From: Macrostomum lignano
Lineage: Eukaryota
Length of the DNA: 64,000 nucleotides
Direction of reading: 5' to 3'
NCBI GenBank assembly: GCA_002269645.1
Contig: NIVC01000658.1
Coordinates: 426,309-490,308, forward strand
Part shown: positions 3,001 through 60,368 of the stretch, in pieces
How positions within the stretch are numbered: position 1 is the stretch's first letter
How the letters are laid out: the number at the start of each line of letters is the position of its first letter
Program-made: the position numbers and the translations under genes
The notes under the pieces: generated by a model
Told to the model about the DNA's origin: nothing
The model's input: only the letters and a program-made list of their open reading frames with translations
The model's database searches: none

Positions 3001-6000
3001 CGTCTAGTCCCAACTCGCGCCTGAGCTGGATGGATGATGAGGCAGGTGTGCACTGTAATTGCAGAATCCTCAGAATCCTCATCATTTAAACTACAGAATC
3101 CTCATCCCTAAACTACAGAACTGTCATTCTCAAACTACAGAACTGTCATTCTCAAACTACAGAACTGTCATTCTCAAACTACAGAACTGTCATTCTCAAA
3201 CTACAGAACTGTCATTCTCAAACTACAGAACTGTCATTCTCAAACTACAGAACTGTCATTCTCAAACTACAGAACTGTCATTCTCAAACTACAGAACTGT
3301 CATTCTCAAACTACAGAACTGTCATTCTCAAACTACAGAACTGTCATTCTCAAACTACAGAACTGTCATTCTCAAACTACAGAACTGTCATTCTCAAACT
3401 ACAGAACTGTCATTCTCAAACTACAGAACTGTCATTCTCAAACTACAGAATCCTCATCCTTAAACTACAGAATCTTCATCCTTAAACTACAGAATCCCAA
3501 GCCAAATTACTCAGCATCCTTAATCCCCCGGCTTCATCAAGTTCCTCACCTCAAACCCGCCGCAGGGCGCCACCGAGAAGCGCGAGATCCACCACTTCCA
3601 GTTCACGGCCTGGCCGGACCACGGCGTGCCCGAGCACTGCGCTCCGCTGCTCATGTTCGCCCGCCGGGTGCACGCCTCCAACCCGCCCGACGCCGGGCCC
3701 ATTGTGGCTCACTGCAGCGCCGGCGTCGGCCGCACTGGGGCCTTCATCGTCATCGATGCGATGCTCGAACGGATGAAGCAGGAGAAGACGCTGGACGTGT
3801 ACGGTCACGTGACCTGCCTTCGGGCGCAGCGGAACTACATGGTGCAGACTGAGGACCAGTACATCTTCATTCACGACTGTCTGTTAGAGGCGGTCATTTG
3901 CGGCAATACCGAGGTGAGAAATTAGATTAAACTATGCTACTTATGTTTTCATGTATCAGTAGTCATGAAAAACTGTATAAAACACAACGTCCTAAAAACT
4001 TGTAACCAAAATTCCAACTCGAAAATACTAACTGGACGGCATAAAAAACACAAACTGGACCGCATCAAAAAACACAAACTGGACCGCATCAAAACACACA
4101 AACTGGACCGCATCAAAACATAAAAAACTGGACCGCATCAAAATACACAAACTGGACCGAATCAAAACATAAAAAACTGGACCGCATCAAAGCACACAAA
4201 CTGGACCGCATCAAAAAACACAAACTGGACCGCATCAAAACACACAAACTGGACCGCATCAAAAAACACAAACTGGACCGCATCAAAGCACACAAACTGG
4301 ACCGCATCAAAAAACACAAACTGGACCGCATCAAAACACACAAACTGGACCGCATCAAAAAACACAAACTGGACCGCATCAAAACACACAAACTGGACCG
4401 CATCAAAACACACAAACTGGACCGCATCAAAACACACAAACTGAACCGCATCAAAATGCACAAACTGGACCGCATCAAAAAACACAAACTGGACCGCATC
4501 AAAGCACACAAACTGGACCGCATCAAAAGACACAAACTGGACCGCATCAAAATGCACAAACTGGACCGCATCAAAACACACAAACTGGACCGCATCAAAA
4601 AACACAAACTGGACCGCATCAAAAAACACAAACTGGACCGCATCAAAATGCACAAACTGGACCGCATCAAAACACACAAACTGGACCGCATCAAAACATA
4701 AAAAACTGGACCGCATCAAAATACACAAACTGGACCGAATCAAAACATAAAAAACTGGACCGCATCAAAGCACACAAACTGGACCGCATCAAAAACACAA
4801 ACTGGACCGCATCAAAAAACACAAACTGGACCGCATCAAAACACACAAACTGGACCGCATCAAAACACACAAACTGGACCGCATCAAAACATAAAAAACT
4901 GGACCGCATCAAAATACACAAACTGGACCGAATCAAAACATAAAAAAACTGGACCGCATCAAAGCACACAAACTGGACCGCATCAAAAACACAAACTGGA
5001 CCGCATCAAAAAACACAAACTGGACCGCATCAAAACACACAAACTGGACCGCATCAAAACACACAAACTGGACCGAATCAAAACATAAAAAACTGGACCG
5101 CATCAAAACACACAAACTGGACCGCATCAAAAAACACAAACTGGACCGCATCAAAACACACAAACTGGACCGCATCAAAAAACACAAACTGGACCGCATC
5201 AAAAAAAACAAACTGGACCGCATCAAAACACACAAACTGGACCGCATCAAAACACACAAACTGGACCGCATCAAAAAACACAAACTGGACCGCATCAAAA
5301 AACACAAACTGGACCGCATCAAAAAACACAAACTGGACCGCATCAAAACACACTAACTGGACCGCATAAAAACACAAACTGGACCGCATCAAAAAACACA
5401 AACTGGACCGCATCAAAACACAAACTGGACCGCATCAAAAAACTCAAACTGGACCGCATCAAAATGCACAAACTGGACCGCATCAAAAAAGACAAACTGG
5501 ACCGCATCAAAAAACACAAACTGGACCGCATCAAAATGCACAAACTGGACCGCATCAAAAAACACAAACTGGACCGCATTAAAAAACACAAACTGGACCG
5601 CATCAAAATGCACAAACTGGACCGCATCAAAATGCACAAACTGGACCGCATCAAGACACACAAACTGGACCGCATCAAAATGCACAAACTGGACCGCATC
5701 AAAATGCACAAACTGGACCGCATCAAAATGCACAAACTGGACCGCATCAAAATGCACAAACTGGACCGCATCAAAATGCAGCAGCTCCCCAACCTCTCCC
5801 AACAGGTGCCGGCCCGAGCCCTCGCCGCCCAGGTGCAGCGGCTGAGCATCCCGGAGCCCGCAGCCGGAGGCGCCACCGGCATGGAGCTGGAGTTCCGCAG
5901 CCTGGCGCACACGGTCAAGCCGACCCCGGCGCACAAGTTCACCAGCGCCAGCCTGCCAGCCAACAAGCTGAAGAATCGCCTGGTCAACATTCTGCCATTC

Positions 6001-7866
6001 GAATCCAATCGAGTCTGCCTGCAGCCGATACGCGGCGTCGAAGGCTCTGACTACATCAACGCCTCCTGGATCGACGGCTACAGACAGCGGTCCTGCTACA
6101 TCGCCACCCAGGGACCGCTGCCGGACACCGCCGAGGACTTCTGGCGCATGCTGTGGGAGCACAACTCCACCATTGTGGTGAACCTCACCAAGCTGCGTGA
6201 GCAAGGTCGGGATAAGTGTCACCAGTATTGGCCTGGGGAGCGGTCAGCCCGCTACCAGTACTTTGTGGTTGACCCCATGGCCGAGTACAACATGCCCAAC
6301 TATATTCTTCGAGAGTTCAAGGTCACCGACGCCAGGGACGGCCAGTCCAGAACGGTGCGCCAGTTCCACTGCACCGACTGGCCAGAGCAGGGCGTGCCAA
6401 AGTCCGGGGAAGGCTTCATCGAATTCATCGGCCAGGTGCACAAGACCAAGGAGCAGTTTGGGCAGGATGGGCCGATCACAGTGCACTGCAGGTGAGCTTT
6501 GCGTGCTCTGCTCAGCTTTGTTAGCAAAATTCATTACTCAGTCATCAGCCATTGCAGATTCATCCCCCAGGCACCAAAAATTCGTCCCTCAGTCATTAAA
6601 GATTCAGTCATTTGATGTTTGTCCCTCAGTCCTTGAAGATTCAGTCATTTGAGGTTTGTCCCTCAGTCATTGAAGATTCAGTCATTTGAGGTTTGTCCCT
6701 CAGTCCTTGAAGATTCAGTCATTTGATGTTTGTCCCTCAGTCATTGAAGATTCAGTCATTTGAGGTTTGTCCCTCAGTCATGAAAGATTCAGTCATTTGA
6801 GGTTTGTCCCTCAGTCATGAAAGATTCAGTCATTTGAGGTTTGTCCCTCAGTCATGGAAGATTCAGTCATTTGAGGTTTGTCCCTCAGTCATGGAAGATT
6901 CAGTCATTTGAGGTTTGTCCCTCAGTCATGAAAGATTCAGTCATTTGAGGTTTGTCCCTCAGTCCTTGAAGATTCAGTCATTTGAGGTTTGTCCCTCAGT
7001 CATGGAAGATTCACTCATTTGAGGTTTGTCCCTCAGTCATGGAAGATTCACTCATTTGAGATTTGTCCCTCAGTCATGGAAGATTCAGTCATTTGAGGTT
7101 TGTCCCTCAGTCATGGAAGATTCAGTCATTTGAGGTTTGTCCCTCAGTCATGGAAGATTCACTCATTTGAGATTTGTCCCTCAGTCATGGAAGATTCAGT
7201 CATTTGAGGTTTGTCCCTCAGTCATGGAAGATTCACTCATTTGAGGTTTGTCCCTCAGTCATGGAAGATTCAGTCATTTGAGGTTTGTCCCTCAGTCATG
7301 GAAGATTCAGTCATTTGAGGTTTGTCCCTCAGTCATGGAAGATTCAGTCATTTGATGTTTGTCCCTCAGTCATTGAAGATTCAGTCATTTGAGGTTTGTC
7401 CCTCAGTCCTTGAAGATCCACTCATTTGAGGTTTGTCCCTCAGTCATGGAAGATTCAGTCATTTGAGGTTTGTCCCTCAGTCATGGTAGATTCAGTCATT
7501 TGATGTTTGTCCCTCAGTCATTGAAAATTCAGTCATTTGAGGTTTGTCCCTCAGTCATTGAAGATTCATCAAATATTCGTCCCTCAGTCATCAAAGATTC
7601 ATCCCCTGGTCATCAAAAATTCGGTCCCTCAGTCGTTCAAGATTTGACCCTCCACCCGCAGCGCTGGCGTGGGCCGCACAGGTGTCTTTCTGGCCCTATC
7701 CGTGGTCCTGGAACGAATGCGCTACGAAGGCGTGGTAGACATGTACCAGACTGTGAGGACACTGCGAACACAGCGCTCAGCAATGGTGCAAACTGATGAG
7801 CAATACCAATTCTGCTATGGAGCAGCCTTGGAGTACCTGTCCTCATTTGATCACTATGCTACCTGA
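1..7866 (+). CDS. Lar: LAR-family (type IIa) receptor protein tyrosine phosphatase, 3' part with tandem D1 and D2 domains. Exons <1-95, 1712-2232, 3566-3913, 5806-6491, 7662-7866
   Basis: Juxtamembrane [15 protein letters not shown]; D1 motifs [16 protein letters not shown] and [10 protein letters not shown]; D2 motifs KNRL, WPEQGVP and [10 protein letters not shown]; C-terminus [10 protein letters not shown]. All four introns are GT-AG and their phases (1,0,0,2) join in frame. The 5' part lies before the window. Confidence 0.97.
104..312 (+). repeat. 16-bp minisatellite (GGGGAATGATTCAGGT), ~13 copies, LAR intron
   Basis: Visible tandem repeat directly after the donor at 96. Confidence 0.9.
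705..1680 (+). repeat. 33/36-bp minisatellite (TTGGTGACTCATCTCGGATGATGAACTTTTCATTGA), LAR intron
   Basis: Visible tandem repeat; source of ORFs 720..1784, 703..1014 and 1018..1665. Confidence 0.95.
3108..3492 (+). repeat. 22-bp minisatellite (CTACAGAACTGTCATTCTCAAA), LAR intron
   Basis: Near-perfect tandem repeat ending ~70 nt before the acceptor at 3565. Confidence 0.95.
4030..5780 (+). repeat. ~24-bp minisatellite (CTGGACCGCATCAAAACACACAAA), ~70 copies, LAR intron
   Basis: Visible tandem repeat ending ~25 nt before the acceptor at 5805. Confidence 0.97.
6585..7635 (+). repeat. 37-bp minisatellite (GTCCCTCAGTCATGGAAGATTCAGTCATTTGAGGTTT), LAR intron
   Basis: Visible tandem repeat filling most of intron 6492-7661. 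Confidence 0.96.
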
Positions 7867-8884
7867 GCAGAAACCTATCGTTTAAACAACAAGAAACCGG
7901 CGATGTTTTTGCGATAAGGAAGAGAGTTTTGATAACAGTGAATCAAAACTTTGATTTCAGATTATTTTCCAATATATTATATATTAATTCCAATCAGTGT
8001 TTATCTATATAAAATGTCTATGGTCAAAACTGCTAGACAATAGTAACATAGCTAGTTTATTTATCTGATACTTTAGTAAGCTTTTAGCTAAAAAAATTAG
8101 CCATAGTTGTTAGTGCAGCACAATCGGTAGCATGTACATTGCACAACTTAGTCTAAACTGTATTTATACTCTGTAGGTGCATAACAGCTTACTCAAACAT
8201 TCTGCCTGATCAATTGAATATTCGCGGACACAACAAAATTACCTATTAATATTCTTCAGCATCCATTGTTTCATTTTTACACTACCGATAAATCCGCCTT
8301 TTGAAGGCCTACGGTACCAATACTACTGAAGCTTGAGTAGTATAGTTTAGCTTGCAGAAACTTGAATGCCGTACCCAGTTTCCACTCCTATTTTTGTGTT
8401 TTGTCAGCCGCCATGCATTTTTGTTTTGGGTTCTCAGCCGTTATTGTTTTTGCTTATCACTTTTAGATACCGTAAATACTCCATTTGCGCCGCTGATCTT
8501 GTTAAACCAAGTTATATTAAAACAAATGCTATATTGCTTTGCATATATTGATATTTCTGAGTAGGTTATCGATATAGCTTTTTGATTAATCAAGCTTTAT
8601 TACCTGTACACAGAAACTGATGCTGTCATTAAGTACGCCGCTAATTAATTTTATTTACTAATCAGTCCATTTTCCACCGCTAAAAGTGCATAAGCTAAAA
8701 GTGTGCAACCTTCGACTGTACAAAATATATTAACGTCGTTTGAATCCGTTCTTCTGTCAGTTGCAATCATCGTTTAATTAAAACAAATAATAGAATATTA
8801 ATAATTCGTAACGTTTAGCTGTGCTTTTTGACAGATTTTTCTATTTAAACGAAATTCTCTAGCACAGATCTATCGTTACTTCTC

Positions 8885-9285
8885 CAGCACAGTTTGAGAG
8901 ATACTCTAGCACAGTTTGAGAGATTCTCCAGCACAGTTTGAGAGATACTCTAGCACAGTTTGAGAGATACCCTAGCGCAGTTTGAGAGATACTCTAGCAC
9001 AGTTTGAGAGATACTCTAGCACAGTTTGAGAGATACTCTAGCACCGTTTGAGAGATACCCTAGCGCAGTTTGAGAGATACTCTAGCACAGTTTGAGAGAT
9101 ACTCTAGCACAGTTTGAGAGATACTCTAGCGCAGTTAGAGAGATACTCTAGCACAGTTTGAGAGATCTCTAGCACAGTTTGAGAGATACTCTAGCACAGT
9201 TTGAGAGATACTCTAGCGCAGTTTGAGAGATACTCTAGCACAGTTTGAGAGATACTCTAGCACAGTTTGAGAGATACTCTAGCAC
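8885..9285 (+). repeat. 22-bp minisatellite (GAGAGATACTCTAGCACAGTTT), intergenic
   Basis: Visible tandem repeat between LAR and the kinesin gene. Confidence 0.95.
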
Positions 9286-9710: not shown

Positions 9711-11535
9711 ATGCTGAGCACATGCCGGATGGAGCAGAAGAGCCAAGGCTATCCGATGTCGGCTGTCGGAGCAGCTGGCGGCACAAGCAGCAGCAGCAGC
9801 AGCGACACCGGCAAACCAGCGCCCGGCGGCGGCAGGGGTCAGCCAGGCGGCAATCGTCGAGGCCGCAGCGGCGACCGACACCTCGACCGCGGTGATCGCG
9901 GCGGCGGTGGCGGTAGCGGCGGCGGCGGCGGCGGCGGCAGCGGAGTCAAACGACGTCGTTGGCGAAGCGCCAAATCGGCGCTGCTGACGGCGCCAAGCGC
10001 CATTGGAGAATTGACTGGGGACTCTTCATGGCCGGCGGCTGACACCGCGGCAGCCTCGCTAGTGGTCAGCGGCGATGCGTGCAGCGGGAGCAGGTAGACT
10101 GATGGATGGGTCCTCGTGTTTGACCGGTTCTACCCTCAGATACCCTCAGATACCCTCAGATACCCTCAGATACCCTCAGATACCCTCAGATACCCTCAGA
10201 TACCCTCAGATACCCTCAGATACCCTCAGATACACTCAGATTACCCTCAGATACCCTCAGATACCCTCAGATACCCTCAGATACCCTCAGATACCCTCAG
10301 ATACCCTCAGAACCTTCAGATACCCTCAGATACCCTCAGATACACTCAGATACCCTTAGATACCCTCAGATACCTTCAGATACCCTCAGATACCCTCAGA
10401 ACCTTCAGATACCCTCAGATACCCTCAGATACCCTTAGATACCCTTAGATACCCTCAGATACCTTCAGATACCCTCAGATACCCTCAGATACCCTCAGAA
10501 CCTTCAGATACCCTCAGATACCCTCAGATACCCTTAGATACCCTCAGATACCTTCAGATACCCTCAGATGCTGCAGTGAGCTGCTGCTAACTACCCTCAG
10601 ATGCTGCAGTGAGCTGCTGCTAGCTGCCCTCAGATGCTGCAGTGAGCTGCTGCTAGCTGCCCTCAGATGCTGCAGTGAGCTGCTAGCTGCCCTCAGATGC
10701 TGCAGTGAGCTGCTGCTAACTACCCTCAGATGCTGCAGTGAGCTGCTGCTAGCTGCCCTCAGATGCTGCAGTGAGCTGCTGCTAGCTGCCCTCAGATGCT
10801 GCAGTGAGCTGCTAGCTGCCCTCAGATGCTGCAGTGAGCTGCTGCTAACTACCCTCAGATGCTGCAGTGAGCTGCTGCTAGCTGCCCTCAGATGCTGCAG
10901 TGAGCTGCTAGCTACCCTCAGATGCTGCAGTGAGCTGCTGCTAACTACCCTCAGATGCTGCAGTGAGCTGCTGCTAGCTACCCTCAGATGCTGCAGTGAG
11001 CTTGCTGCTAGCTACCCTCAGATGCTGCAGTGAGCTGCTGCTTGCTACCCTCAGATGCTTCACAAATGCACAAACATTCGGGCAGCTCAAACTGAGTAGC
11101 GCATCGATAACGCATCCGACTCTTTCGTCAAAGTCCGTAGGTCTGATTTCGTTTATAGGGCCAACTCACGTGACACAGCGTATGTACACTGCCGGAAAAT
11201 GAGAAGTCAGGGCTGCTGTAGGCCCCTGTATCCTGTTGCCCAAAAATGAATTTAATTTAAATTAACTCTCTCGTCTTTGTCAGGTACTCGCCGTTCCCCC
11301 AGCGCGCCTTCCTAGCTGACAAGGACTGGCAGCAGCTGTCTGCTAGGCGCGACAACGGCAAGCTGGCCAAATGCCGACTGTCAAACGACAAGTACAGCCG
11401 CATGTTGTACAGCTATCACAGACTGTACCAAGAGTACCAGTACATCTGCGCCTGTCTGCTGCCCCAGTCTGCTAAGCAACAGCAGATTGAACAGTTCGAA
11501 ACTGTCGGAGAGTCGCACAATAATTCCGACAAGAT

Positions 11536-11634
<99 letters not shown>

Positions 11635-14600
11635 GCCATCGGGCATTAAAGAATTCGGCGAACTCAATGGCAACGTCATCCTGCCCGACCGGAACTTCCG
11701 GCTTCGTACTTGCCGGAAACGGCGCAGTGTTGTGTGCAATCAGATGCTGACGAGATCGGAGTTCGGCACGGCGGTTTGGCTCAGTGTGCCCATCGTCATT
11801 GAGCTACTGCTGCCTCGGCTGCAGAAACAAATCCAAGCTATTGTGTGCGCCTGCCCTCACATATCCGACCCGCTGGAGGTGATGCAGCTTAAATGCTTGC
11901 TTGCTTTTTCTAAAAGTTCCTAATTGCCTACTGTAGAGCTTTGTCTAGTACTTTCGGAACCTTTTAGTATATAAAAATTATTGTAGAGGGGATCCTAAAT
12001 AAGACAACCAACTGTTTGATGAAGGCTCAACTTACTTTTAGCTTAGCTGCAGGAGTTCCGAGCATCCGTCCGGATACAGCGGATGGGGACGTCGCCACCC
12101 ATTCCGCCAAGCCCTGGCGACCATGGGCAGCTGGTGCTGACGTGTCGCACAGGGAGATCCGGTGGTGCCGGTGTCGACAGCGCGGTCCCCCTCCGGAGAG
12201 TCCAAAAGGTGGATGGTCGCTCGCTCGCGGTAGCCCTTAAGTAGCGGACGAGCTGGCAGAGATTCTCGGGAAACAATCATGACCCGAGAGTGATTTGAGC
12301 AAGCATATTAATGATTAGTTGTAACTTCATTGCCGATTGGTTAGAAAGGATACTAGATAAGATATTTAACTGCTTCATGGCGTCGCAACCAGAAACTCAG
12401 AAGGTTCTCGTACTAGTACACCTCTCCATCCATGGTGACAGAAAATTGCCTAACCGCCATAACATCGTATGTAGTGATATATGGTTATCTTCATTTGCGA
12501 CTTGCATAGTCCACTTTCATTGAAGTAGATGCTGCCGCGACTTTCAGGTGCTGGCGGAGCTTCGCGCCAGCCGCTACGACACTGAGCGCTGCATCGAATA
12601 CCTGCGCCAGACGCTGCCACTGCGGACCGTTGTACGCGACGTCCTGTCTGTACGTTCGGCTCCCGGTAGAGTGAACTTCTCCTCGGGCACTGCTACCACA
12701 GTGACAGCCGAAGGCAACGCCAACAACACCACCACACGGGCTGCGTCGCCAAGAATGGGAGGAGCAGCGACAGCGGCGGCTCCGGGCCTGCCAGCCATGG
12801 CCGCGTCGGGCGACCCAGCTGAAGCGGAAGCCGGCGGTCGTCCGCTGCTGCGGGGCGTACGTCGATTGCGCGCCGATGTGCAGGTGGTGCGCGCCTCCCT
12901 GTCCTCCGTGTCAGCCGCGATGGCCGCAGGGCTGGGGAAGATTCGCTGCCACCTCAGCGCACAGCAGGAGAGGGCCAAGCGGCAGCTCCAGCAGCTGCAG
13001 CAGCCGCAACAGCAGCAGCAGGATCAGTCGGCTGCGCTCAGTCGCATGCAAAAGTGCTTAGACGAGTTGCGTCAAAAGTGTCGCGAAGAAGAGTCCCGAC
13101 GTCGGTTGGCTTTCAACGCTTTGCAGGTGAACTTTCTTAGAAAGCTAAGCAGTGTAGGAGCGCATAGATTTCTGAATGGTTTTGAGTCCTAAGAGTTGTT
13201 TACTATGTCTTATGTCTGTACTATTCTCGATTTACGACTATTACAACTATAGTAATATGCAACGTCCCAAAATTTAACACGTGACACTTCTTGACCCTGC
13301 ATGGTAGCACTCAATAGTTATTCGTACGAGCGTATATTCCTGTATAAAGCCACAGGCAATACGAATCACACGTTAGGAGCAACTCGGCAACATCCGGGTT
13401 TACTGTCGCTGCACTAGAATCGAGGGCGATCAAGCTGTGGAACCGATCACTCAGGAGCAAGTCCGGGTGCGCAGCCAGCTGCAGTCGCAGCAGTTAAGTC
13501 AGCAGAGCCAGCAGCAGGGTCAACAGCAGCCTCAACAGGAGGAGGTGTTCCGTTTCGACCGGGTGTTTGGACCAGACGCACCGCAGGAGACTCTTTTCGA
13601 AGAGCTCCGACCGTTGATTACGTCATTTCTGGACGGTTACAACGTCTGTTTCATTACCTACGGAGGCGAGGCTAGCGGCAAGACGTTCACACTGCTGGGC
13701 AGCTCAAAGCAGAGGGTGAGTTTGATTAGCTCAACGAAAGTCTTGAATTCGAGCATTCAGTTTAAGACACAACCAACCATATTCAACCTATGCTTTGAAG
13801 ATAGTCTTTGTGCCAAAACCGTGTATGCGGAGAGCATTGAATTTAAGACGTCGAGCAGTTGAATCCAGACTTGAGCTCAAAACCAGTTTGGACAATAAGT
13901 TGTTCATTTTTTGACGAACGTAAAAGCGAAGAAGTGAAAAAGTGAAATAGCTTTTTGTGATTGATCCTCATGTGAATGATGCTGATGATAGAGCTGACAT
14001 TAGACTATGATTCGATGTTTTTGTTCTTTCATCAGATTGTGTCTGCGCATGTGGCATAGACAGACAGTGTTTTGACCATAGACGAAAGTAGAAACATTGA
14101 TTGAATATGAGTCAACAATATTAGACGCACGTGCTATAGCTTCCTTTTTGCAAAACTTTTTGCATCCACGATTAAGATTGTTCGCTTTTAGCAATATTTT
14201 CTTGCTACTTTTCAGTTGGCAACCTCTTATAGTAAGGGTTAGGTTAAGAGGATGACCTCCCTCTTGAGGACATGACCGCCCTGAAAATCATGAACTCTTC
14301 ATCACACGAGCTATTAACGCCCGCAGGGTCTGGTCTACCGAGCGCTGCTCGCCGTCCTACACGAGACAGCCAGTCGAGCAGCCGACTGGAGCATGGAGCT
14401 GGACACCGCCTGCCTAGAGATCTATAACGACGCCTGTTTCGACCTGCTGTCTGAAAGGCAGCCGGTCAGCCTGTACAAAGACTGCAGCCTGGCGTCGGCG
14501 TTTAGCGCTCTACGCTTGGCGCCAATTCGAGAGGAGAACGACGTTACTCAACTATTGCGCGCCTGTTCCGCACGGCGCCGAGTAGCTAAAACGGCGCTAA

Positions 14601-15040
14601 ATCCGCGCTCATCCAGATCGCACCTGGTGCACCTGGTCAGACTGCAGGCCCGCTCCAGGGTACACGGGCACACAACCTGTTCCTATCTCGGTATGATGGA
14701 CCTAGCCGGAGCGGAGAACATCATCAAGGCGGACACCTGGCGCGAGCCAGAACGCGCAGCCGAGGCCGGGCACATCAACCGCTCGCTGGCCGCCTTCAAC
14801 CGTCTCTTCCTGACGCTTCGTCGTACACCGCCGGGCGCCGCCTGCTACAGGGAGGCCAGGCTAACGCAGATGCTAAAGCCGTTCCTAGTGAACCATGGCA
14901 AGTGCTGCATCATAGTCACCGTGCGCACGGACTCGAGCTCGGCTAGTGGCAGTCTGAGCACGCTGCGTTTTGGCCGCGACGCGCGACAGGTGGCGCTGGG
15001 CAAAGCGCAACGCCAGCTGCTGGTTGCGAGCGTGGACTAG
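9711..15040 (+). CDS. Kinesin-14-like protein (C-terminal motor, KIFC3/KIF25-like), ~869 aa. Exons 9711-10093, 11284-11878, 12548-13126, 13377-13715, 14327-15040
   Basis: Neck/motor start Q|EQLGNIRVYCR, then FRFDRVF, P-loop YGGEASGKT, switch I NPRSSRSH, switch II DLAGAE, INRSL and LSTLRFG. A coiled coil precedes the motor. Four GT-AG introns join in frame (phases 2,0,0,0). The motor exons are secure; the start codon and exon 1-2 linkage are less certain. Confidence 0.88.
10130..11058 (+). repeat. Composite array: 10-bp TACCCTCAGA (to ~10568), then a 30-33-bp unit CCCTCAGATGCTGCAGTGAGCTGCTGCTAGCTG; kinesin intron 1
   Basis: Two abutting tandem arrays that share the core CCCTCAGAT. Confidence 0.95.
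11537..11635 (+). repeat. Coding (CAG)22(CAA)10CAG tract encoding 33 Gln
   Basis: Read directly from the sequence, in frame within kinesin exon 2. Confidence 0.92.
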
Positions 15041-15284: not shown

Positions 15285-18200
15285 GTCTAGAGAGGGCGGG
15301 TAGTGCCTAGAGTGGGCGGGTAGTGTCTACAGAGGGCGGGTAGTGCCTAGAGTGGGCGGGTAGTGTCTAGAGAGGGCGGGTAGTGTCTACAGAGGGCGGG
15401 TAGTGCCTAGAGTGGGCGGGTAGTGTCTAGAGAGGGCGGGTAGTGTCTAGAGAGGGCGGATAGTGTCTAGAGAGGGCGGGTAGTGCCTAGAGTGGGCGGG
15501 TAGTGTCTAGAGTGGGCGGGTAGTGTCTAGAGTGGGCGGGTAGTGTCTAGAGAGGGCGGGTAGTGTCTACAGAGGGCGGGTAGTGTCTAGAGAGGGCGGA
15601 TAGTGTCTAGAGTGGGCGGATAGTGTCTAGAGAGGGCGGGTAGTGCCTTTAGTGGGCGGGTAGTGCCTTTAGTGGGCGGATAGTGTCTAGAGTGGGCGGA
15701 TAGTGTCTAGAGTGGGCGGATAGTGTCTAGAGAGGGCGGAAAGTGTCTAGAGTGCGCGGGTAGTGCCTAGAGAGGGCGGGTAGTGCCTAGAGAGGGCGGG
15801 TAGTGTCTAGAGTGGGCGGGTAGTGCCTAGTGTGCGGGTAGTGCCTTTAGTGGGCGGATAGTGTCTAGAGTGGGCGGGTAGTGCCTAGAGTGCGCGGGTA
15901 GTGTCTAGAGTGCGCGGGTAGTGTCTAGAGAGGGCGGGTAGTATCTAGAGTGGGCAGATAGTGTCTAGAGAGGGCGGATAGTGTCTAGAGTGGGCGGGTA
16001 GTGTCTAGAGAGGGTGGGTAGAGCCTAGAGTGGGCGGATAGTGTCTAGAGTGGGCGGGTAGTGTCTAGAGAGGGCGGATAGTGTCTAGAGTGGGCGGATA
16101 GTGTCTAGAGAGGGCGGGTAGTGCCTTTAGTGGGCGGATAGTGTCTAGAGTGGGCGGATAGTGTCTAGAGTGGGCGGATAGTGTCTAGAGAGGGCGGATA
16201 GTGTCTAGAGAGGGCGGGTAGTGCCTAGAGTGGGCGGGTAGTGTCTAGAGTGGGCGGGTAGTGTCTAGAGAGGGCGGATAGTGTCTAGAGAGGGCGGATA
16301 GTGTCTAGAGAGGGCGGGTAGTGCCTTTAGTGGGCGGATAGTGTCTAGAGTGGGCGGGTAGTGCCTTTAGTGGGCGGATAGTGTCTAGAGTGGGCGGATA
16401 GTGTCTAGAGTGGGCGGATAGTGTCTAGAGTGGGCGGATAGTGTCTAGAGAGGGCGGATAGTGTCTAGATGGGCGGATAGTGTCTAGAGAGGGCGGGTAG
16501 TGCCTAGAGTGCGCGGGTAGTGTCTAGAGTGGGCGGGTAGTGTCTAGAGAGGGCGGGTAGTGTCTACAGAGGGCGGGTAGTGTCTACAGAGGGCGGATAG
16601 TGTCTAGAGAGGGCGGATAGTGTCTAGAGTGGGCGGATAGTGTCTAGAGAGGGCGGGTAGTGCCTTTAGTGGGCGGATAGTGTCTAGAGTGGGCGGGTAG
16701 TGTCTAGAGTGGGCGGGTAGTGTCTACAGAGGGCGGGTAGTGTCTACAGAGGGCGGGTAGTGTCTAGAGAGGGCGGGTAGTGTCTACAGAGGGCGGGTAG
16801 TGTCTAGAGAGGGCGGGTAGTGTCTAGAGTGTGCGGGTAGTGCCTAGAGAGGGCGGAAAGTGTCTAGAGTGCGCGGTAGTGCCTAGAGAGGGCGGGTAGT
16901 GCCTAGAGAGGGCGGGTAGTGTCTAGAGTGGGCGGGTAGTGCCTAGTGTGCGGGTAGTGCCTTTAGTGGGCGGATAGTGTCTAGAGTGGGCGGGTAGTGC
17001 CTAGAGTGCGCGGGTAGTGTCTAGAGAGGGCTAGTAGTATCTAGAGTGGGCAGATAGTGTCTAGAGAGGGCGGATAGTGTCTAGAGTGGGCGGGTAGTGT
17101 CTAGAGAGGGTGGGTAGAGCCTAGAGTGGGCGGATAGTGTCTAGAGTGGGCGGGTAGTGTCTAGAGAGGGTGGGTAGTGTCTACAGAGGGCGGGTAGTGC
17201 CTAGAGTGGGCGGGTAGTGTCTAGAGAGGGCGGGTAGTGTCTAGAGAGGGCGGATAGTGTCTAGAGAGGGCGGGTAGTGCCTAGAGTGGGCGGGTAGTGT
17301 CTAGAGTGGGCGGGTAGTGTCTAGAGTGGGCGGGTAGTGTCTAGAGAGGGCGGGTAGTGTCTACAGAGGGCGGGTAGTGTCTAGAGAGGGCGGATAGTGT
17401 CTAGAGTGGGCGGATAGTGTCTAGAGAGGGCGGGTAGTGCCTTTAGTGGGCGGATAGTGTCTAGAGTGGGCGGATAGTGTCTAGAGTGGGCGGATAGTGT
17501 CTAGAGTGGGCGGATAGTGTCTAGAGAGGGCGGGTAGTGTCTAGAGTGGGCGGGTAGTGTCTAGAGAGGGCGGATAGTGTCTACAGAGGGCGGATAGTGT
17601 CTAGAGAGGGCGGGTAGTGCCTAGAGTGGGCGGGTAGTGTCTAGAGTGGGCGGGTAGTGTCTAGAGAGGGCGGGTAGTGTCTACAGAGGGCGGGTAGAGT
17701 CTAGAGAGGGCGGGTAGTGTCTAGAGAGGGCGGATAGTGTCTAGAGTGGGCGGATAGTGTCTAGAGAGGGCGGGTAGTGTCTACAGAGGGCGGGTAGTGT
17801 CTAGAGAGGGCGGATAGTGTCTAGAGAGGGCGGATAGTGTCTAGAGTGGGCGGATAGTGTCTAGAGAGGGCGGAAAGTGTCTAGAGTGCGCGGGTAGTGC
17901 CTAGAGAGGGCGGGTAGTGCCTAGAGAGGGCGGGTAGTGTCTAGAGTGGGCGGGTAGTGCCTAGTGTGCGGGTAGTGCCTTTAGTGGGCGGATAGTGTCT
18001 AGAGTGGGCGGGTAGTGCCTAGAGTGCGCGGGTAGTGTCTAGAGTGCGCGGGTAGTGTCTAGAGAGGGCGGGTAGTATCTAGAGTGGGCAGATAGTGTCT
18101 AGAGAGGGCGGATAGTGTCTAGAGTGGGCGGGTAGTGTCTAGAGAGGGTGGGTAGAGCCTAGAGTGGGCGGATAGTGTCTAGAGTGGGCGGGTAGTGTCT

Positions 18201-21200
18201 AGAGAGGGCGGATAGTGTCTAGAGTGGGCGGATAGTGTCTAGAGAGGGCGGGTAGTGCCTTTAGTGGGCGGATAGTGTCTAGAGTGGGCGGATAGTGTCT
18301 AGAGTGGGCGGATAGTGTCTAGAGAGGGCGGATAGTGTCTAGAGAGGGCGGGTAGTGCCTAGAGTGGGCGGGTAGTGTCTAGAGTGGGCGGGTAGTGTCT
18401 AGAGAGGGCGGATAGTGTCTAGAGAGGGCGGATAGTGTCTAGAGAGGGCGGGTAGTGCCTTTAGTGGGCGGATAGTGTCTAGAGTGGGCGGGTAGTGCCT
18501 TTAGTGGGCGGATAGTGTCTAGAGTGGGCGGATAGTGTCTAGAGTGGGCGGATAGTGTCTAGAGTGGGCGGATAGTGTCTAGAGAGGGCGGATAGTGTCT
18601 AGATGGGCGGATAGTGTCTAGAGAGGGCGGGTAGTGCCTAGAGTGCGCGGTAGTGTCTAGAGTGGGCGGGTAGTGTCTAGAGAGGGCGGGTAGTGTCTAC
18701 AGAGGGCGGGTAGTGTCTAGAGAGGGCGGATAGTGTCTAGAGAGGGCGGATAGTGTCTAGAGTGGGCGGATAGTGTCTAGAGAGGGCGGGTAGTGCCTTT
18801 AGTGGGCGGATAGTGTCTAGAGTGGGCGGGTAGTGTCTAGAGTGGGCGGGTAGTGTCTACAGAGGGCGGGTAGTGTCTACAGAGGGCGGGTAGTGTCTAG
18901 AGAGGGCGGGTAGTGTCTACAGAGGGCGGGTAGTGTCTAGAGAGGGCGGGTAGTGTCTAGAGTGTGCGGGTAGTGCCTAGAGAGGGCGGAAAGTGTCTAG
19001 AGTGCGCGGGTAGTGCCTAGAGAGGGCGGGTAGTGCCTAGAGAGGGCGGGTAGTGTCTAGAGTGGGCGGGTAGTGCCTAGTGTGCGGGTAGTGCCTTTAG
19101 TGGGCGGATAGTGTCTAGAGTGGGCGGGTAGTGCCTAGAGTGCGCGGGTAGTGTCTAGAGAGGGCTAGTAGTATCTAGAGTGGGCAGATAGTGTCTAGAG
19201 AGGGCGGATAGTGTCTAGAGTGGGCGGGTAGTGTCTAGAGAGGGTGGGTAGAGCCTAGAGTGGGCGGATAGTGTCTAGAGTGGGCGGGTAGTGTCTAGAG
19301 AGGGTGGGTAGTGTCTACAGAGGGCGGGTAGTGCCTAGAGTGGGCGGGTAGTGTCTAGAGAGGGCGGGTAGTGTCTAGAGAGGGCGGATAGTGTCTAGAG
19401 AGGGCGGGTAGTGCCTAGAGTGGGCGGGTAGTGTCTAGAGTGGGCGGGTAGTGTCTAGAGTGGGCGGGTAGTGTCTAGAGAGGGCGGGTAGTGTCTACAG
19501 AGGGCGGGTAGTGTCTAGAGAGGGCGGATAGTGTCTAGAGTGGGCGGATAGTGTCTAGAGAGGGCGGGTAGTGCCTTTAGTGGGCGGATAGTGTCTAGAG
19601 TGGGCGGATAGTGTCTAGAGTGGGCGGATAGTGTCTAGAGTGGGCGGATAGTGTCTAGAGAGGGCGGGTAGTGTCTAGAGTGGGCGGGTAGTGTCTAGAG
19701 AGGGCGGATAGTGTCTACAGAGGGCGGATAGTGTCTAGAGAGGGCGGGTAGTGCCTAGAGTGGGCGGGTAGTGTCTAGAGTGGGCGGGTAGTGTCTAGAG
19801 AGGGCGGGTAGTGTCTACAGAGGGCGGGTAGAGTCTAGAGAGGGCGGGTAGTGTCTAGAGAGGGCGGATAGTGTCTAGAGTGGGCGGATAGTGTCTAGAG
19901 AGGGCGGGTAGTGTCTACAGAGGGCGGGTAGTGTCTAGAGAGGGCGGGTAGTGTCTACAGAGGGCGGGTAGTGTCTAGAGAGGGCGGGTAGTGTCTAGAG
20001 TGTGCGGGTAGTGCCTAGAGAGGGCGGAAAGTGTCTAGAGTGCGCGGGTAGTGCCTAGAGAGGGCGGGTAGTGCCTAGAGAGGGCGGGTAGTGTCTAGAG
20101 TGGGCGGGTAGTGCCTAGTGTGCGGGTAGTGCCTTTAGTGGGCGGATAGTGTCTAGAGTGGGCGGGTAGTGCCTAGAGTGCGCGGGTAGTGTCTAGAGAG
20201 GGCTAGTAGTATCTAGAGTGGGCAGATAGTGTCTAGAGAGGGCGGATAGTGTCTAGAGTGGGCGGGTAGTGTCTAGAGAGGGTGGGTAGAGCCTAGAGTG
20301 GGCGGATAGTGTCTAGAGTGGGCGGGTAGTGTCTAGAGAGGGTGGGTAGTGTCTACAGAGGGCGGGTAGTGCCTAGAGTGGGCGGGTAGTGTCTAGAGAG
20401 GGCGGGTAGTGTCTAGAGAGGGCGGATAGTGTCTAGAGAGGGCGGGTAGTGCCTAGAGTGGGCGGGTAGTGTCTAGAGTGGGCGGGTAGTGTCTAGAGTG
20501 GGCGGGTAGTGTCTAGAGAGGGCGGGTAGTGTCTACAGAGGGCGGGTAGTGTCTAGAGAGGGCGGATAGTGTCTAGAGTGGGCGGATAGTGTCTAGAGAG
20601 GGCGGGTAGTGCCTTTAGTGGGCGGATAGTGTCTAGAGTGGGCGGATAGTGTCTAGAGTGGGCGGATAGTGTCTAGAGTGGGCGGATAGTGTCTAGAGAG
20701 GGCGGGTAGTGTCTAGAGTGGGCGGGTAGTGTCTAGAGAGGGCGGATAGTGTCTACAGAGGGCGGATAGTGTCTAGAGAGGGCGGGTAGTGCCTAGAGTG
20801 GGCGGGTAGTGTCTAGAGTGGGCGGGTAGTGTCTAGAGAGGGCGGGTAGTGTCTACAGAGGGCGGGTAGAGTCTAGAGAGGGCGGGTAGTGTCTAGAGAG
20901 GGCGGATAGTGTCTAGAGTGGGCGGATAGTGTCTAGAGAGGGCGGGTAGTGTCTACAGAGGGCGGGTAGTGTCTAGAGAGGGCGGATAGTGTCTAGAGAG
21001 GGCGGATAGTGTCTAGAGTGGGCGGATAGTGTCTAGAGAGGGCGGAAAGTGTCTAGAGTGCGCGGGTAGTGCCTAGAGAGGGCGGGTAGTGCCTAGAGAG
21101 GGCGGGTAGTGTCTAGAGTGGGCGGGTAGTGCCTAGTGTGCGGGTAGTGCCTTTAGTGGGCGGATAGTGTCTAGAGTGGGCGGGTAGTGCCTAGAGTGCG

Positions 21201-24200
21201 CGGTAGTGTCTAGAGTGCGCGGTAGTGTCTAGAGAGGGCGGGTAGTATCTAGAGTGGGCAGATAGTGTCTAGAGAGGGCGGATAGTGTCTAGAGTGGGCG
21301 GGTAGTGTCTAGAGAGGGTGGGTAGAGCCTAGAGTGGGCGGATAGTGTCTAGAGTGGGCGGGTAGTGTCTAGAGAGGGCGGATAGTGTCTAGAGTGGGCG
21401 GATAGTGTCTAGAGAGGGCGGGTAGTGCCTTTAGTGGGCGGATAGTGTCTAGAGTGGGCGGATAGTGTCTAGAGTGGGCGGATAGTGTCTAGAGAGGGCG
21501 GATAGTGTCTAGAGAGGGCGGGTAGTGCCTAGAGTGGGCGGGTAGTGTCTAGAGTGGGCGGGTAGTGTCTAGAGAGGGCGGATAGTGTCTAGAGAGGGCG
21601 GATAGTGTCTAGAGAGGGCGGGTAGTGCCTTTAGTGGGCGGATAGTGTCTAGAGTGGGCGGGTAGTGCCTTTAGTGGGCGGATAGTGTCTAGAGTGGGCG
21701 GATAGTGTCTAGAGTGGGCGGATAGTGTCTAGAGTGGGCGGATAGTGTCTAGAGAGGGCGGATAGTGTCTAGATGGGCGGATAGTGTCTAGAGAGGGCGG
21801 GTAGTGCCTAGAGTGCGCGGGTAGTGTCTAGAGTGGGCGGGTAGTGTCTAGAGAGGGCGGGTAGTGTCTACAGAGGGCGGGTAGTGTCTAGAGAGGGCGG
21901 ATAGTGTCTAGAGAGGGCGGATAGTGTCTAGAGTGGGCGGATAGTGTCTAGAGAGGGCGGGTAGTGCCTTTAGTGGGCGGATAGTGTCTAGAGTGGGCGG
22001 GTAGTGTCTAGAGTGGGCGGGTAGTGTCTACAGAGGGCGGGTAGTGTCTACAGAGGGCGGGTAGTGTCTAGAGAGGGCGGGTAGTGTCTACAGAGGGCGG
22101 GTAGTGTCTAGAGAGGGCGGGTAGTGTCTAGAGTGTGCGGGTAGTGCCTAGAGAGGGCGGAAAGTGTCTAGAGTGCGCGGGTAGTGCCTAGAGAGGGCGG
22201 GTAGTGCCTAGAGAGGGCGGGTAGTGTCTAGAGTGGGCGGGTAGTGCCTAGTGTGCGGGTAGTGCCTTTAGTGGGCGGATAGTGTCTAGAGTGGGCGGGT
22301 AGTGCCTAGAGTGCGCGGGTAGTGTCTAGAGAGGGCTAGTAGTATCTAGAGTGGGCAGATAGTGTCTAGAGAGGGCGGATAGTGTCTAGAGTGGGCGGGT
22401 AGTGTCTAGAGAGGGTGGGTAGAGCCTAGAGTGGGCGGATAGTGTCTAGAGTGGGCGGGTAGTGTCTAGAGAGGGTGGGTAGTGTCTACAGAGGGCGGGT
22501 AGTGCCTAGAGTGGGCGGGTAGTGTCTAGAGAGGGCGGGTAGTGTCTAGAGAGGGCGGATAGTGTCTAGAGAGGGCGGGTAGTGCCTAGAGTGGGCGGGT
22601 AGTGTCTAGAGTGGGCGGGTAGTGTCTAGAGTGGGCGGGTAGTGTCTAGAGAGGGCGGGTAGTGTCTACAGAGGGCGGGTAGTGTCTAGAGAGGGCGGAT
22701 AGTGTCTAGAGTGGGCGGATAGTGTCTAGAGAGGGCGGGTAGTGCCTTTAGTGGGCGGATAGTGTCTAGAGTGGGCGGATAGTGTCTAGAGTGGGCGGAT
22801 AGTGTCTAGAGTGGGCGGATAGTGTCTAGAGAGGGCGGGTAGTGTCTAGAGTGGGCGGGTAGTGTCTAGAGAGGGCGGATAGTGTCTACAGAGGGCGGAT
22901 AGTGTCTAGAGAGGGCGGGTAGTGCCTAGAGTGGGCGGGTAGTGTCTAGAGTGGGCGGGTAGTGTCTAGAGAGGGCGGGTAGTGTCTACAGAGGGCGGGT
23001 AGAGTCTAGAGAGGGCGGGTAGTGTCTAGAGAGGGCGGATAGTGTCTAGAGTGGGCGGATAGTGTCTAGAGAGGGCGGGTAGTGTCTACAGAGGGCGGGT
23101 AGTGTCTAGAGAGGGCGGATAGTGTCTAGAGAGGGCGGATAGTGTCTAGAGTGGGCGGATAGTGTCTAGAGAGGGCGGGTAGTGCCTTTAGTGGGCGGAT
23201 AGTGTCTAGAGTGGGCGGATAGTGTCTAGAGTGGGCGGATAGTGTCTAGAGAGGGCGGATAGTGTCTAGAGAGGGCGGGTAGTGCCTAGAGTGGGCGGGT
23301 AGTGTCTAGAGTGGGCGGGTAGTGTCTAGAGAGGGCGGGTAGTGTCTACAGAGGGCGGGTAGTGTCTAGAGAGGGCGGATAGTGTCTAGAGAGGGCGGAT
23401 AGTGTCTAGAGAGGGCGGGTAGTGCCTTTAGTGGGCGGATAGTGTCTAGAGTGGGCGGGTAGTGCCTTTAGTGGGCGGATAGTGTCTAGAGTGGGCGGAT
23501 AGTGTCTAGAGTGGGCGGATAGTGTCTAGAGTGGGCGGATAGTGTCTAGAGAGGGCGGATAGTGTCTAGATGGGCGGATAGTGTCTAGAGAGGGCGGGTA
23601 GTGCCTAGAGTGCGCGGGTAGTGTCTAGAGTGGGCGGGTAGTGTCTAGAGAGGGCGGGTAGTGTCTACAGAGGGCGGGTAGTGTCTAGAGAGGGCGGATA
23701 GTGTCTAGAGAGGGCGGATAGTGTCTAGAGTGGGCGGATAGTGTCTAGAGAGGGCGGGTAGTGCCTTTAGTGGGCGGATAGTGTCTAGAGTGGGCGGGTA
23801 GTGTCTAGAGTGGGCGGGTAGTGTCTACAGAGGGCGGGTAGTGTCTACAGAGGGCGGGTAGTGTCTAGAGAGGGCGGGTAGTGTCTACAGAGGGCGGGTA
23901 GTGTCTAGAGAGGGCGGGTAGTGTCTAGAGTGTGCGTGTAGTGCCTAGAGAGGGCGGAAAGTGTCTAGAGTGCGCGGGTAGTGCCTAGAGAGGGCGGGTA
24001 GTGCCTAGAGAGGGCGGGTAGTGCCTTTAGTGGGCGGATAGTGTCTAGAGTGGGCGGGTAGTGTCTAGAGTGGGCGGGTAGTGTCTACAGAGGGCGGGTA
24101 GTGTCTACAGAGGGCGGGTAGTGTCTAGAGAGGGCGGGTAGTGTCTACAGAGGGCGGGTAGTGTCTAGAGAGGGCGGGTAGTGTCTAGAGTGTGCGGGTA

Positions 24201-27200: not shown

Positions 27201-27526
27201 GATATTGTCTAGAGTGGGCGGATAGTGTCTAGAGAGGGCGGGTAGTGCCTAGAGTGGGTGGATAGTGTCTAGAGTGGGCGGGTAGAGCCTAGAGTGGGCG
27301 GATAGTGTCTAGAGTGGGCGGGTAGAGCCTAGAGTGGGCGGATAGTGTCTAGAGTGGGCGGATAGTGTCTAGAGTGGGCGGATAGTGTCTAGAGAGGGCG
27401 GGTAGTGCCTAGAGTGGGCGGGTAGAGCCTAGAGTGGGCGGATAGTGTCTAGAGTGGGCGGGTAGTGCCTAGAGTGGGCGGGTAGAGCCTAGAGTGGGCG
27501 GATAGTGTCTAGAGTGGGCGGGTAGT
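15285..27526 (+). repeat. 12.2-kb satellite of 20-bp units (TAGTGTCTAGAGAGGGCGGG and variants), ~610 copies, with higher-order structure
   Basis: Continuous tandem array; rare variants recur at ~1.02 and ~1.12-kb spacing. Confidence 0.98.
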
Positions 27527-46012: not shown

Positions 46013-46718
46013 TTAATATTGATATAAGATTTTATCTTTTTTATTCTAAAAAATTATTAAAGAATATGTATATAATTCAAATAATTAGGATTATAGGAGT
46101 GACTTCAATATAATATAGCTAAAATAATCATATTTATAAAGCAAGAAAAAATATCTATGTTTGCAAGAAAAAGATTGGGAGCAAGCTTGGTTTAATAAGT
46201 TGGCCCAATGGAAGCACTTTTTAAAGGCTAATAAATCAGTTTATCTACTAAGCAGATAAGTGTTAGTAGTAGACAATATCAATAAAAACAAAATATTGTA
46301 CATTGTCAAGGTCTGTTGAAAACAGCATCATTTGGTATGCCTCTGTCTGGTCGAAGTTGCAAACAAAGGCCATACTACCAACCAAATCTTGAGTGTAGAC
46401 ATTTTGTGGCAGAACTGTATAAATTATTATTATTATTATTATTATTATATTATTATTTTTGTTATTGTATTACAAGTATAACCAGTGCTATGGTATATTA
46501 TAGTAACTGTGCTAGCACAATGAAATTAATAAATGCTCAATGCCATTTTCTAGGCATTTTTGTTGCTAACTTATAGGTGATTATTAGATTGCACCTTTCT
46601 TGTGCCTCGACTTTCTTGTTTTACTATTATCAACTAATAAGATGGCAGGGAATTAAGCAATCAAATACAAGCCATAGTTGCTCAGGCTAATTACCTGTTA
46701 AATCTCACATTGCCATGC

Positions 46719-47114
46719 ATGGCCTTGCAGCTTGAGACATTTCCGGCCAATTTCGCCCTGATTGGGCAGCAGTTCATGCAGGCATTCTATGCCACACTGC
46801 AGACCAACAGGGAGCAGCTGGCCAATTTCTATTATGACCAGGCCATGCTGACATACGAGGGCGCCCAGCTAATGGGCAAGGCTGCCATCATGACCAAGTA
46901 TCGGTCGCTGGGCTTCCAGCACATCAGCATGGCGATCACCAATGCCGACTATCAGCCGGTTGAACGGGGCGTCCTGATTGCTGTCAATGGGCAGCTTCGA
47001 GTTGACGATGCCACGCAGCCGCTGCCCTTTACTGAAACTTTCCTACTGCGCAGCTTCGGCCAGAGCTTCGCCATTGTTAATCACATCTTTCGGCTGGGCG
47101 TGCACAACTATTGA
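46719..47114 (+). CDS. NUTF2: Nuclear transport factor 2 (NTF2), ~131 aa, intronless coding region
   Basis: IGQQFMQAFY, NREQLANFY, MLTYEG, GKAAIMTK, DYQP, VNGQLRVDD, FTETFLL and NHIFRLGVHNY* match the NTF2 family along the whole length. First ATG is at 46719. Confidence 0.93.
   Translation: MALQLETFPANFALIGQQFMQAFYATLQTNREQLANFYYDQAMLTYEGAQLMGKAAIMTKYRSLGFQHISMAITNADYQPVERGVLIAVNGQLRVDDATQPLPFTETFLLRSFGQSFAIVNHIFRLGVHNY

Positions 47115-54262: not shown

Positions 54263-60368
<6,106 letters not shown>

Follow-up and report, generated by a model that had tools for sequence, protein, structure and literature searches.

What kind of motor is encoded at the kinesin locus of the flatworm Macrostomum lignano, and does its tail recognize ubiquitin? 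The locus occupies positions 9711-15040 (+ strand) of the window, i.e., the whole 64,000-nucleotide stretch of DNA that was analysed (positions 426,309 to 490,308 of contig NIVC01000658.1, assembly GCA_002269645.1). A preliminary description, made from the sequence alone, read it as a kinesin-14 motor fused to a CUE/UBA-like domain. We suggest that the locus is a member of a previously undescribed kinesin-14 subfamily, conserved across flatworms, in which a tail with a small module of about 100 residues precedes a coiled coil and a C-terminal motor. Taken as a whole, this explanation is considered probable.

The motor and its flatworm family

Pfam Kinesin (PF00225) matched residues 550-854 of the predicted protein (E=6.7e-69, 232.8 bits against a cut-off of 29.3), and Microtub_bd (PF16796), which spans the neck and the first part of the motor, matched residues 505-673 (E=3.8e-33, 115 bits against a cut-off of 27). 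The motor is C-terminal: it ends at residue 854 of 869, 15 residues before the stop codon, and the tail and stalk are N-terminal to it. The kinesin-14 neck EQLGNIRVYCR (residues 520-530; LGNIRVYCR at 13383-13409) follows the predicted coiled coil. These features bear out the preliminary assignment to a kinesin-14-type protein with a C-terminal motor.

Since a full-length query was swamped by poly-Gln/Gly words (five distant kinesins were returned), orthologues were found with the motor alone, after removal of a low-complexity insert. The four best matches were flatworm or unnamed proteins (44-52% identity), followed by KIFC1, CTK2 and KIN14 proteins from a wide range of eukaryotes (identity about 30-33%), and all named matches outside the family were KIFC1, CTK2 or KIN14. 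Based on a cluster look-up, the family includes proteins of M. lignano, Paragonimus spp., Fasciola hepatica, F. gigantica, Trichobilharzia regenti and T. szidati. Further members are known from the cestodes Mesocestoides corti, Spirometra, Sparganum and Schistocephalus and from the monogenean Protopolystoma xenopodis. Their database names are "Kinesin motor domain-containing protein", "Kinesin protein", "uncharacterized", "hypothetical" or "unnamed", i.e., the proteins are publicly deposited yet uncharacterised. The gene is thus not unique and belongs to a clade-wide flatworm family that was already public under generic names. In full-text literature searches, neither a kinesin with a CUE or UBA domain nor any work on flatworm kinesin-14s came up, in agreement with the earlier statement that no characterised animal kinesin-14 is known to have this architecture.

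The tail module was sought in 1.84 billion representative proteins by an exhaustive HMMER search with a 74-column profile, built from two orthologue segments and the exact exon-2 and exon-3 pieces of the window. Sixteen proteins were matched at E<=0.001. Thirteen are flatworm proteins (down to E=4e-34), namely complete kinesins or, where the gene models are split or partial, pieces with the tail alone; the others are one repeat artefact and the proteins P0141 and P0142. A three-sequence module profile gave no matches in a word-indexed search. Judged by these searches, the module, in recognisable form, is confined to this kinesin clade.

A neighbour-joining (NJ) tree of motor domains was constructed with 100 bootstraps from kinesin-14 sequences only. 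The flatworm proteins formed one clade (100/100), in which the window protein and the other Macrostomum sequence were sisters (100/100). This clade stood apart from the KIFC1-like (14A-like) group and from the sampled KIFC2/3-like and plant-like (14B-like) groups. P0141 joined the flatworm clade in 100/100 replicates and P0142 in 94/100. P0141, a kinesin-14 with the same tail module, comes from a Tara Pacific coral long-read metagenome (L004, Logan ERR14224706), and P0142, also a kinesin-14 with this module, is encoded at L003:7983-12864 (ENA ERZ25071792). From these two proteins, the architecture may be older or wider than flatworms.

The P-loop of the window protein is GGEASGKT (13662-13685), which retains GxxxxGKT of the canonical GQTGSGKT. 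All flatworm family members (P0006-P0009, P0126-P0139) carry YGGEASGKT or the variants GSEASGKT and GGESSGKT, whereas P0141 has the canonical YGQTGSGKT and the P0142 reading frame agrees (YGQTG) up to the exon edge. The flatworm change is therefore fixed and clade-specific in the sequences compared; to our knowledge, this motif is otherwise near-invariant among kinesins. In addition, the alpha5/L12 microtubule-binding motif is YREARLT (14846-14866) instead of YRDSKLT of the family, and the RxRP proline after the neck is absent from the window copy (CRCTR). It is possible that a kinesin altered in this way is ATPase-impaired and, instead of working in transport, binds microtubules statically, cross-links them or serves as a regulatory subunit. 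However, switch I (NPRSSRSH, 14600-14623) and switch II (DLAGAE, 14699-14716) are intact, GxxxxGKT, NxxSSRSH and DLAGxE are kept clade-wide, and the motor scores 233 bits against Pfam Kinesin. Conservation of the Walker A core and both switches across the clade points to selection for nucleotide handling, and an impaired ATPase seems to us quite unlikely.

Gene model and continuity of tail and motor

The 869-residue protein is encoded by a 2610-nucleotide open reading frame (ORF) of five joined exons that ends in TAG, and all exon borders are GT-AG. The parts of the gene are given below (a slash marks an exon border).

Exon 1, predicted: 9711-10093, + strand; residues 1-128, beginning with ATG; low-complexity, rich in Gly, Arg and Ser; phase-2 end at the donor CAG/GTAGAC; based on the ORF and splice sites
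Exon 2: 11284-11878, + strand; residues 128-326; acceptor tctttgtcag/G and donor GAG/gtgatg; collinear with orthologues; contains block A, the 33-Gln tract, the predicted beta-meander, alpha0, alpha1 and the start of alpha2
Block A: 11291-11464, + strand; residues 131-188; motif pair PPxxF....DW ... RxxRL..AF..LYxEY
33-Gln tract: 11537-11635, + strand; residues 213-245; CAG, then CAA codons; lineage-specific low-complexity linker
Tail module, part 1: 11696-11878, + strand; residues 266-326; three predicted beta strands, alpha0 (VPIVIEL), alpha1 and the loop CPHISDP; based on the structure model mdbec4b84e4ce and conservation
Exon 3: 12548-13126, + strand; residues 327-519; end of the module, Ala/Thr/Gly-rich linker and predicted coiled-coil stalk; based on splice sites and PF16796
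Tail module, part 2: 12548-12655, + strand; residues 327-362; rest of predicted alpha2 (...VLAELRA), loop SRY and long alpha3 (DTERCIEYLRQTLPLRTVVRDVLSV)
Coiled-coil stalk, predicted: 12845-13382, + strand; about residues 426-521, spanning the exon 3/4 border; based on the pattern of the sequence and on kinesin-14 architecture
Exon 4: 13377-13715, + strand; residues 520-632; neck, Gln-rich loop insert and divergent P-loop
Exon 5: 14327-15040, + strand; residues 633-869 and stop; remaining motor, with TAG at 15038-15040

The peptide ...IQAIVCACPHISDPLE/VLAELRASRYDTERCIEYL, claimed in the preliminary description for the exon 2/3 junction, was reproduced exactly at residues 326/327, and the count of 33 Gln (residues 213-245) was exact as well. 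Junctions 2/3, 3/4 and 4/5 fall inside sequence that is unbroken and collinear in the orthologues (DPLEVAAELR; MQEQLGNVRVY). Upstream of exon 2, an in-frame stop was found at 11258 (nine codons 5'), with no ATG between this stop and the conserved PFPQRAFLADKDW motif, so exon 2 must be preceded by another coding exon. The sole phase-compatible consensus donor within the exon-1 ORF is at position 10093. The N-termini of the window protein and its Macrostomum orthologue are both basic and of low complexity, and they cannot be aligned. Of the five-exon gene proposed earlier, exons 2-5 are upheld by the GT-AG borders and the collinear orthologues, whereas exon 1 has the standing of a prediction.

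In place of the 33 Gln, the orthologues carry differing variable linkers. A further Gln-rich insert, SQLQSQQLSQQSQQQGQQQPQQ, was found at 13470-13550 (exon 4); it occupies a surface loop early in the motor that holds different variable inserts in the orthologues. This insert and the 33-Gln tract suggest a general CAG/CAA expansion in the kinesin gene. Minus-strand ORFs within 9.7-13 kb were rejected as genes and regarded as shadows of GC-rich coding and low-complexity sequence.

Could the tail have been joined to the motor by a gene-model artefact, exons 1-3 belonging to a different transcript from the motor exons? Two public annotations separate the tail from the motor. In T. regenti, an uncharacterized tail protein (P0127, CAH8876379.1) and a motor protein (P0008, CAH8876380.1) have consecutive accessions, and in Protopolystoma the tail (P0132) and the motor (P0009) are split likewise. 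These split annotations speak for an artefact. Against an artefact, the T. szidati orthologue (P0126) is one uninterrupted ORF of 960 codons (L002:6001-8883) in a chromosome-scale assembly and runs from block A through the module and stalk to the motor. By its single ORF, the T. szidati gene shows that the split models of T. regenti and Protopolystoma are one gene in each species. Furthermore, the module is continuous with the motor in P0006, on a 2.6-kb contig (L001:341-2230, GCA_046766455.1), and in P0141, a continuous ORF of 743 residues on its long-read metagenome contig. More than ten annotated full-length orthologues have the identical order of parts, and all junctions of the window gene are in phase. 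Based on these sequence comparisons, the tail and motor are fused in one protein. For exons 2-5 an artefact is essentially excluded, and for the locus as a whole we regard it as extremely improbable.

The P0006 contig also carries block-A sequence (HALYQEYCYVCDKLLP, L001:3-206) located 5' of the module-motor ORF, in another frame and with an intervening stop. A short intron, a frameshift or an error of assembly could account for this break.

The tail module and its UBA-like core

The exon 2-3 domain is not a product of chance, because it is kept in 15 other proteins with four invariant positions in its 48-residue core: a Pro that precedes helix 1, a Glu and an Arg within helix 2, and a Tyr in the loop joining helices 2 and 3. 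A Cys (15/17), Asp-Pro-Leu and Ala-Glu-Leu are near-invariant. Block A, N-terminal to the variable linker, has invariant F, R, L, Y and Y in an alignment of 13 orthologues; it had no Pfam match and could be assigned to no known family.

The structure of the module was predicted with AlphaFold 2 (AF2) from family alignments headed by the window protein. A 103-residue slice gave a predicted local distance difference test (pLDDT) score of 80, with more than 90 in the core, and a 118-residue slice (mdbec4b84e4ce) gave a pLDDT of 84 and a predicted template modelling score (pTM) of 0.72. In these models the module of about 100 residues is predicted to open with a beta-meander of three strands; a short helix then leads to a bundle of three helices, the last of which (alpha3) is long. 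The elements are listed below.

Beta strands (AF2): residues 266-272, 278-285 and 291-295
Helices (AF2): alpha0, residues 298-301, within the invariant P-x3-E-x3-P; alpha1, 305-317; alpha2, 324-333; alpha3, 338-362

The "unassigned globular segment", previously treated as a separate unit, is dissolved by this prediction, as AF2 places the beta-meander and the short helix in the same module. In contrast, the view that exons 2-3 encode a small, conserved domain of helices N-terminal to the coiled coil is supported by both the alignments and AF2.

When the helical core of the 103-residue model was compared with the PDB using Foldseek, about 33 of the 50 top matches were UBA, CUE or UBA-like domains. 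The core superposed on UBA/CUE structures with a root-mean-square deviation (rmsd) of 1.3-2.2 Å over about 40-53 residues and a target-normalised template modelling (TM) score of 0.6-0.77. The UBA of UBE2K was aligned over 42 residues at 1.6 Å (probability 0.89), the CUE of Tollip over 40 residues at 1.3 Å, and the TM scores for the UBA of EDD in complex with ubiquitin (2qho) and for the UBA of Mud1 were 0.76 and 0.77. Other matches included the UBAs of HHR23A, TNK1, Dcn1 and USP5 and the NAC and HBS1-like domains; the remainder were mostly Sec14-type N-terminal bundles. Thus, a UBA-like fold of the modelled core is supported, as a likeness at the level of fold and not as proof of homology.

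The CUE identity proposed in the preliminary description fared less well than this fold, and a "CUE domain" is not shown. Pfam detected no CUE, UBA or other tail domain in the window protein at E<=10. Among the 17 members, the sole match to Pfam CUE (PF02845) was that of P0142 (E=0.2, 11.8 bits against a cut-off of 21.1). GIP1_N (PF06972), which we take to be a UBA-clan family, matched P0142 (20.3 bits, E=6e-4) and P0141 (19.5 bits, E=1e-3) below its cut-off of 26.4 bits, in the same register as the CUE match. Among PDB sequences, the P0142 core matched only the ASCC2 CUE (2di0, E=0.76), with its Cys-Pro aligned to the (Phe/Leu)-Pro of the CUE. The Met-Phe-Pro motif at the end of helix 1 is absent: the window protein has Ala-Cys-Pro-His, and the family has Cys (15/17), Pro (9/17) and Phe/Tyr (14/17). 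The reading of Cys-Pro as a substitute for Phe-Pro therefore agrees with the P0142/ASCC2 alignment but is weakened by the predominance of Cys at the Phe position and by a Pro in only about half of the members. The family aromatic comes after the loop-1 Pro and not before it, and the window protein has His there. By its residues, the Cys-Pro-Phe/Tyr loop looks as much like the UBA Met-Gly-Phe/Tyr as like a CUE. In alpha3, the pair at the CUE di-leucine spacing is Tyr-Leu in the window protein and Tyr/His/Phe-Phe/Leu in the family, and the helix runs on for 15-20 residues. A match of the core profile A6 to designed consensus tetratricopeptide (TPR) repeats was rejected: it summed 15-residue stretches of less than 5 bits each, and the model is not a TPR array.

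Does the module, then, act as a functional CUE/UBA domain, making the protein a minus-end motor that recognises ubiquitylated cargo directly? The UBA-like core, the ubiquitin-bound EDD UBA and the Tollip CUE among the top Foldseek matches, the ASCC2 match with Cys-Pro in the CUE register, the aromatic after the loop-1 Pro and the hydrophobic pair at the di-leucine position are all in its favour. There is also a precedent among motors, as Leishmania myosin XXI, an actin motor, has been described with two UBA-like domains (PMC7188243). On the other hand, the Pfam CUE and UBA families do not match the window protein, the Met-Phe-Pro motif is missing, and Sec14-like N-terminal bundles also appear among the top structural matches. 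In the models, moreover, the beta-meander and alpha0 packed on the bundle might hide the face normally used for binding. Many UBA-like folds are not known to bind ubiquitin (NXF1 TAP-C, the EF-Ts N-terminus, the Sec14 N-terminal bundle). Direct recognition of ubiquitylated cargo is thus unlikely in our opinion, and the binding of ubiquitin or a ubiquitin-like protein by the module, which we infer from the fold, is doubtful too. The widest form of the proposal, in which a minus-end reader of ubiquitin or a ubiquitin-like protein with a rewired P-loop exists not only in flatworms, free-living and parasitic alike, but also in two or more other lineages, is rated as improbable.

It is also conceivable that the core is only convergently UBA-shaped and has an intramolecular or structural role instead of cargo recognition: a second dimerisation site, an autoinhibitory docking onto the motor, or an ATP-independent contact with microtubules or tubulin. 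Kinesin-14 tails usually have a second microtubule-binding site, and some CUE/UBA domains dimerise. This would be consistent with the missing significant sequence link to any UBA-clan family, with the whole beta3-alpha4 module being without a PDB counterpart, and with the invariant charged Glu and Arg and the Tyr on alpha2 and loop 2. However, nucleotide-independent microtubule binding is better ascribed to the basic low-complexity N-terminus than to the near-neutral folded module. A long disordered linker parts the module from the stalk, as expected of a cargo or adaptor head, and the sub-threshold UBA-clan Pfam matches in two relatives share a register. A purely structural role is therefore only a tentative option, and one we do not expect.

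The explanation favoured here, a flatworm kinesin-14 subfamily with a UBA-like tail module, has to be set against a number of results that weigh against it. The tree is NJ-only and has long branches, exon 1 and its start codon are predictions from sequence, and with the altered P-loop and YREARLT normal motility is not to be assumed. Regarding the fold, Foldseek found no credible whole-domain counterpart of the 118-residue module in the PDB, and none of its core matches there was significant (best E about 1, range about 1-6, none below 0.5); three-helix bundles are the simplest of folds. No flatworm member had a UBA-clan Pfam match at E<=10, and hhalign gave a probability of 6.9% for the family core against the ASCC2 CUE. 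Among PDB sequences, the A1 profile found nothing and the A3 profile only noise (CHCHD7, inturned). These last null results are weak evidence, since in a calibration with phmmer the real ASCC2 CUE (2di0) retrieved no other CUE/UBA chain. Finally, the most conserved surface residues sit in alpha2 and the alpha2-alpha3 loop; canonical UBA/CUE domains contact ubiquitin through the alpha1 loop and alpha3.

Proposed function, surroundings and comparison with known systems

Based on the above results, the protein is organized as follows. A predicted basic low-complexity N-terminus, which possibly binds microtubules, is followed by block A, a disordered linker with the 33 Gln and the tail module of about 100 residues. 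A second linker leads to a predicted coiled coil of about 80-95 residues, which presumably dimerises the protein, and then to the kinesin-14 neck and the C-terminal motor. Minus-end-directed walking or sliding along microtubules is probable for the motor, given its class, C-terminal position and conserved GN neck. The tail module is the probable partner-binding end and may dock the motor to a protein cargo, an adaptor or a regulator.

Kinesin-14 proteins are generally portrayed as cross-linkers of the spindle, with tails that do no more than bind a second microtubule. The flatworms, as a whole phylum, retain a kinesin-14 with a folded, strongly conserved and otherwise unseen tail module with a UBA-like core, together with a fixed non-canonical P-loop. 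Should ubiquitin or a specific adaptor be the ligand of the module, this would be a new route of cargo selection for minus-end transport. If it proved to be a ubiquitin reader, this would be the first kinesin to link direct recognition of ubiquitylated proteins to minus-end transport, e.g., for clearing or positioning ubiquitylated material. Whatever its ligand, the family is a lineage-restricted marker that is present in Fasciola, Paragonimus, schistosomatids and tapeworms, and the tail module was not detected in any vertebrate protein of the library searched (1.84 billion representatives). M. lignano offers an experimentally tractable free-living model for the family, and the two-gene annotation in public records for T. 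regenti and Protopolystoma is corrected.

The surroundings of the gene are rich in repeats. A 12.2-kb minisatellite (15285-27526) begins 245 nucleotides past the kinesin stop codon and consists of about 614 copies (89% match) of the 20-bp unit GTCTAGAGTGGGCGGGTAGT; its + strand is strongly G-rich (GC skew about +0.6). Intron 1 is nearly filled (10131-11059) by two adjoining arrays, of 10 bp x 44 (TACCCTCAGA) and 33 bp x 15, and a 22-bp x 18 array (8882-9285) ends about 430 nucleotides 5' of the predicted ATG. Tandem arrays are unusually abundant throughout the window and are the source of many long spurious ORFs.

Just upstream of the kinesin gene, two + strand exons (1732-2286 and 5464-6495) matched Pfam Y_phosphatase (E=2.5e-43 and 4.5e-56), which indicates a putative tandem-domain receptor-type protein tyrosine phosphatase gene on the same strand, with intronic minisatellites. 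Other Pfam matches in the window were as follows.

31134-31667, - strand: ORF with a pICln/Voldacs domain (E=9e-13)
46710-47114, + strand: NTF2 ORF (E=1e-25)
50107-50685, + strand: weak remnant of a Sleeping-Beauty-type transposase helix-turn-helix (E=5e-6, below cut-off)
59976-60443, - strand: first part of a rhodopsin-family G-protein-coupled receptor (E=3e-19)

As for known systems, the core resembles UBA and CUE domains (UBE2K, EDD, HHR23A, Mud1, Tollip, ASCC2) in being a three-helix bundle of about 40-50 residues with similar helix lengths and loop spacing, with an aromatic in loop 1 of the family and, as a possible further likeness, Tyr-Phe/Leu in alpha3 at the di-leucine position. Unlike them, the family module has no significant profile match and neither Met-Phe-Pro nor Met-Gly-Phe, its alpha3 extends over about 25 residues, and the bundle is preceded by the invariant P-x3-E-x3-P helix and a beta-meander. 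Myosin VI and Leishmania myosin XXI likewise combine a motor with a small helical tail domain of the ubiquitin-binding type. They are actin motors, and the kinesin module is likened to theirs by its predicted fold.

Among the kinesins, the protein shares with kinesin-14A (KIFC1/HSET, Drosophila Ncd, Xenopus XCTK2, Kar3/Pkl1) the C-terminal motor, the coiled coil with the GN(I/V)RV neck and a basic tail region, and 14A proteins are the best named motor matches outside the family (30-33% identity). The differences are that 14A keeps GQTGSGKT and that the flatworm family falls outside the KIFC1-like group in the NJ tree; we know of no kinesin-14A tail with a folded UBA-like module or block A. From kinesin-14B (KIFC2/KIFC3, plant KCBP with MyTH4-FERM, KCH with a CH domain) the family differs in its tail, a predicted beta-meander with a UBA-like bundle that is confined to this clade, and in its motors, which did not group with the sampled KIFC2/3-like and plant-like sequences. 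The general plan is nevertheless that of kinesin-14B, in which a folded tail domain particular to the lineage is joined to a kinesin-14 motor and neck and determines the partner, as in the KIN14I match with its MyTH4 and FERM Pfam domains.

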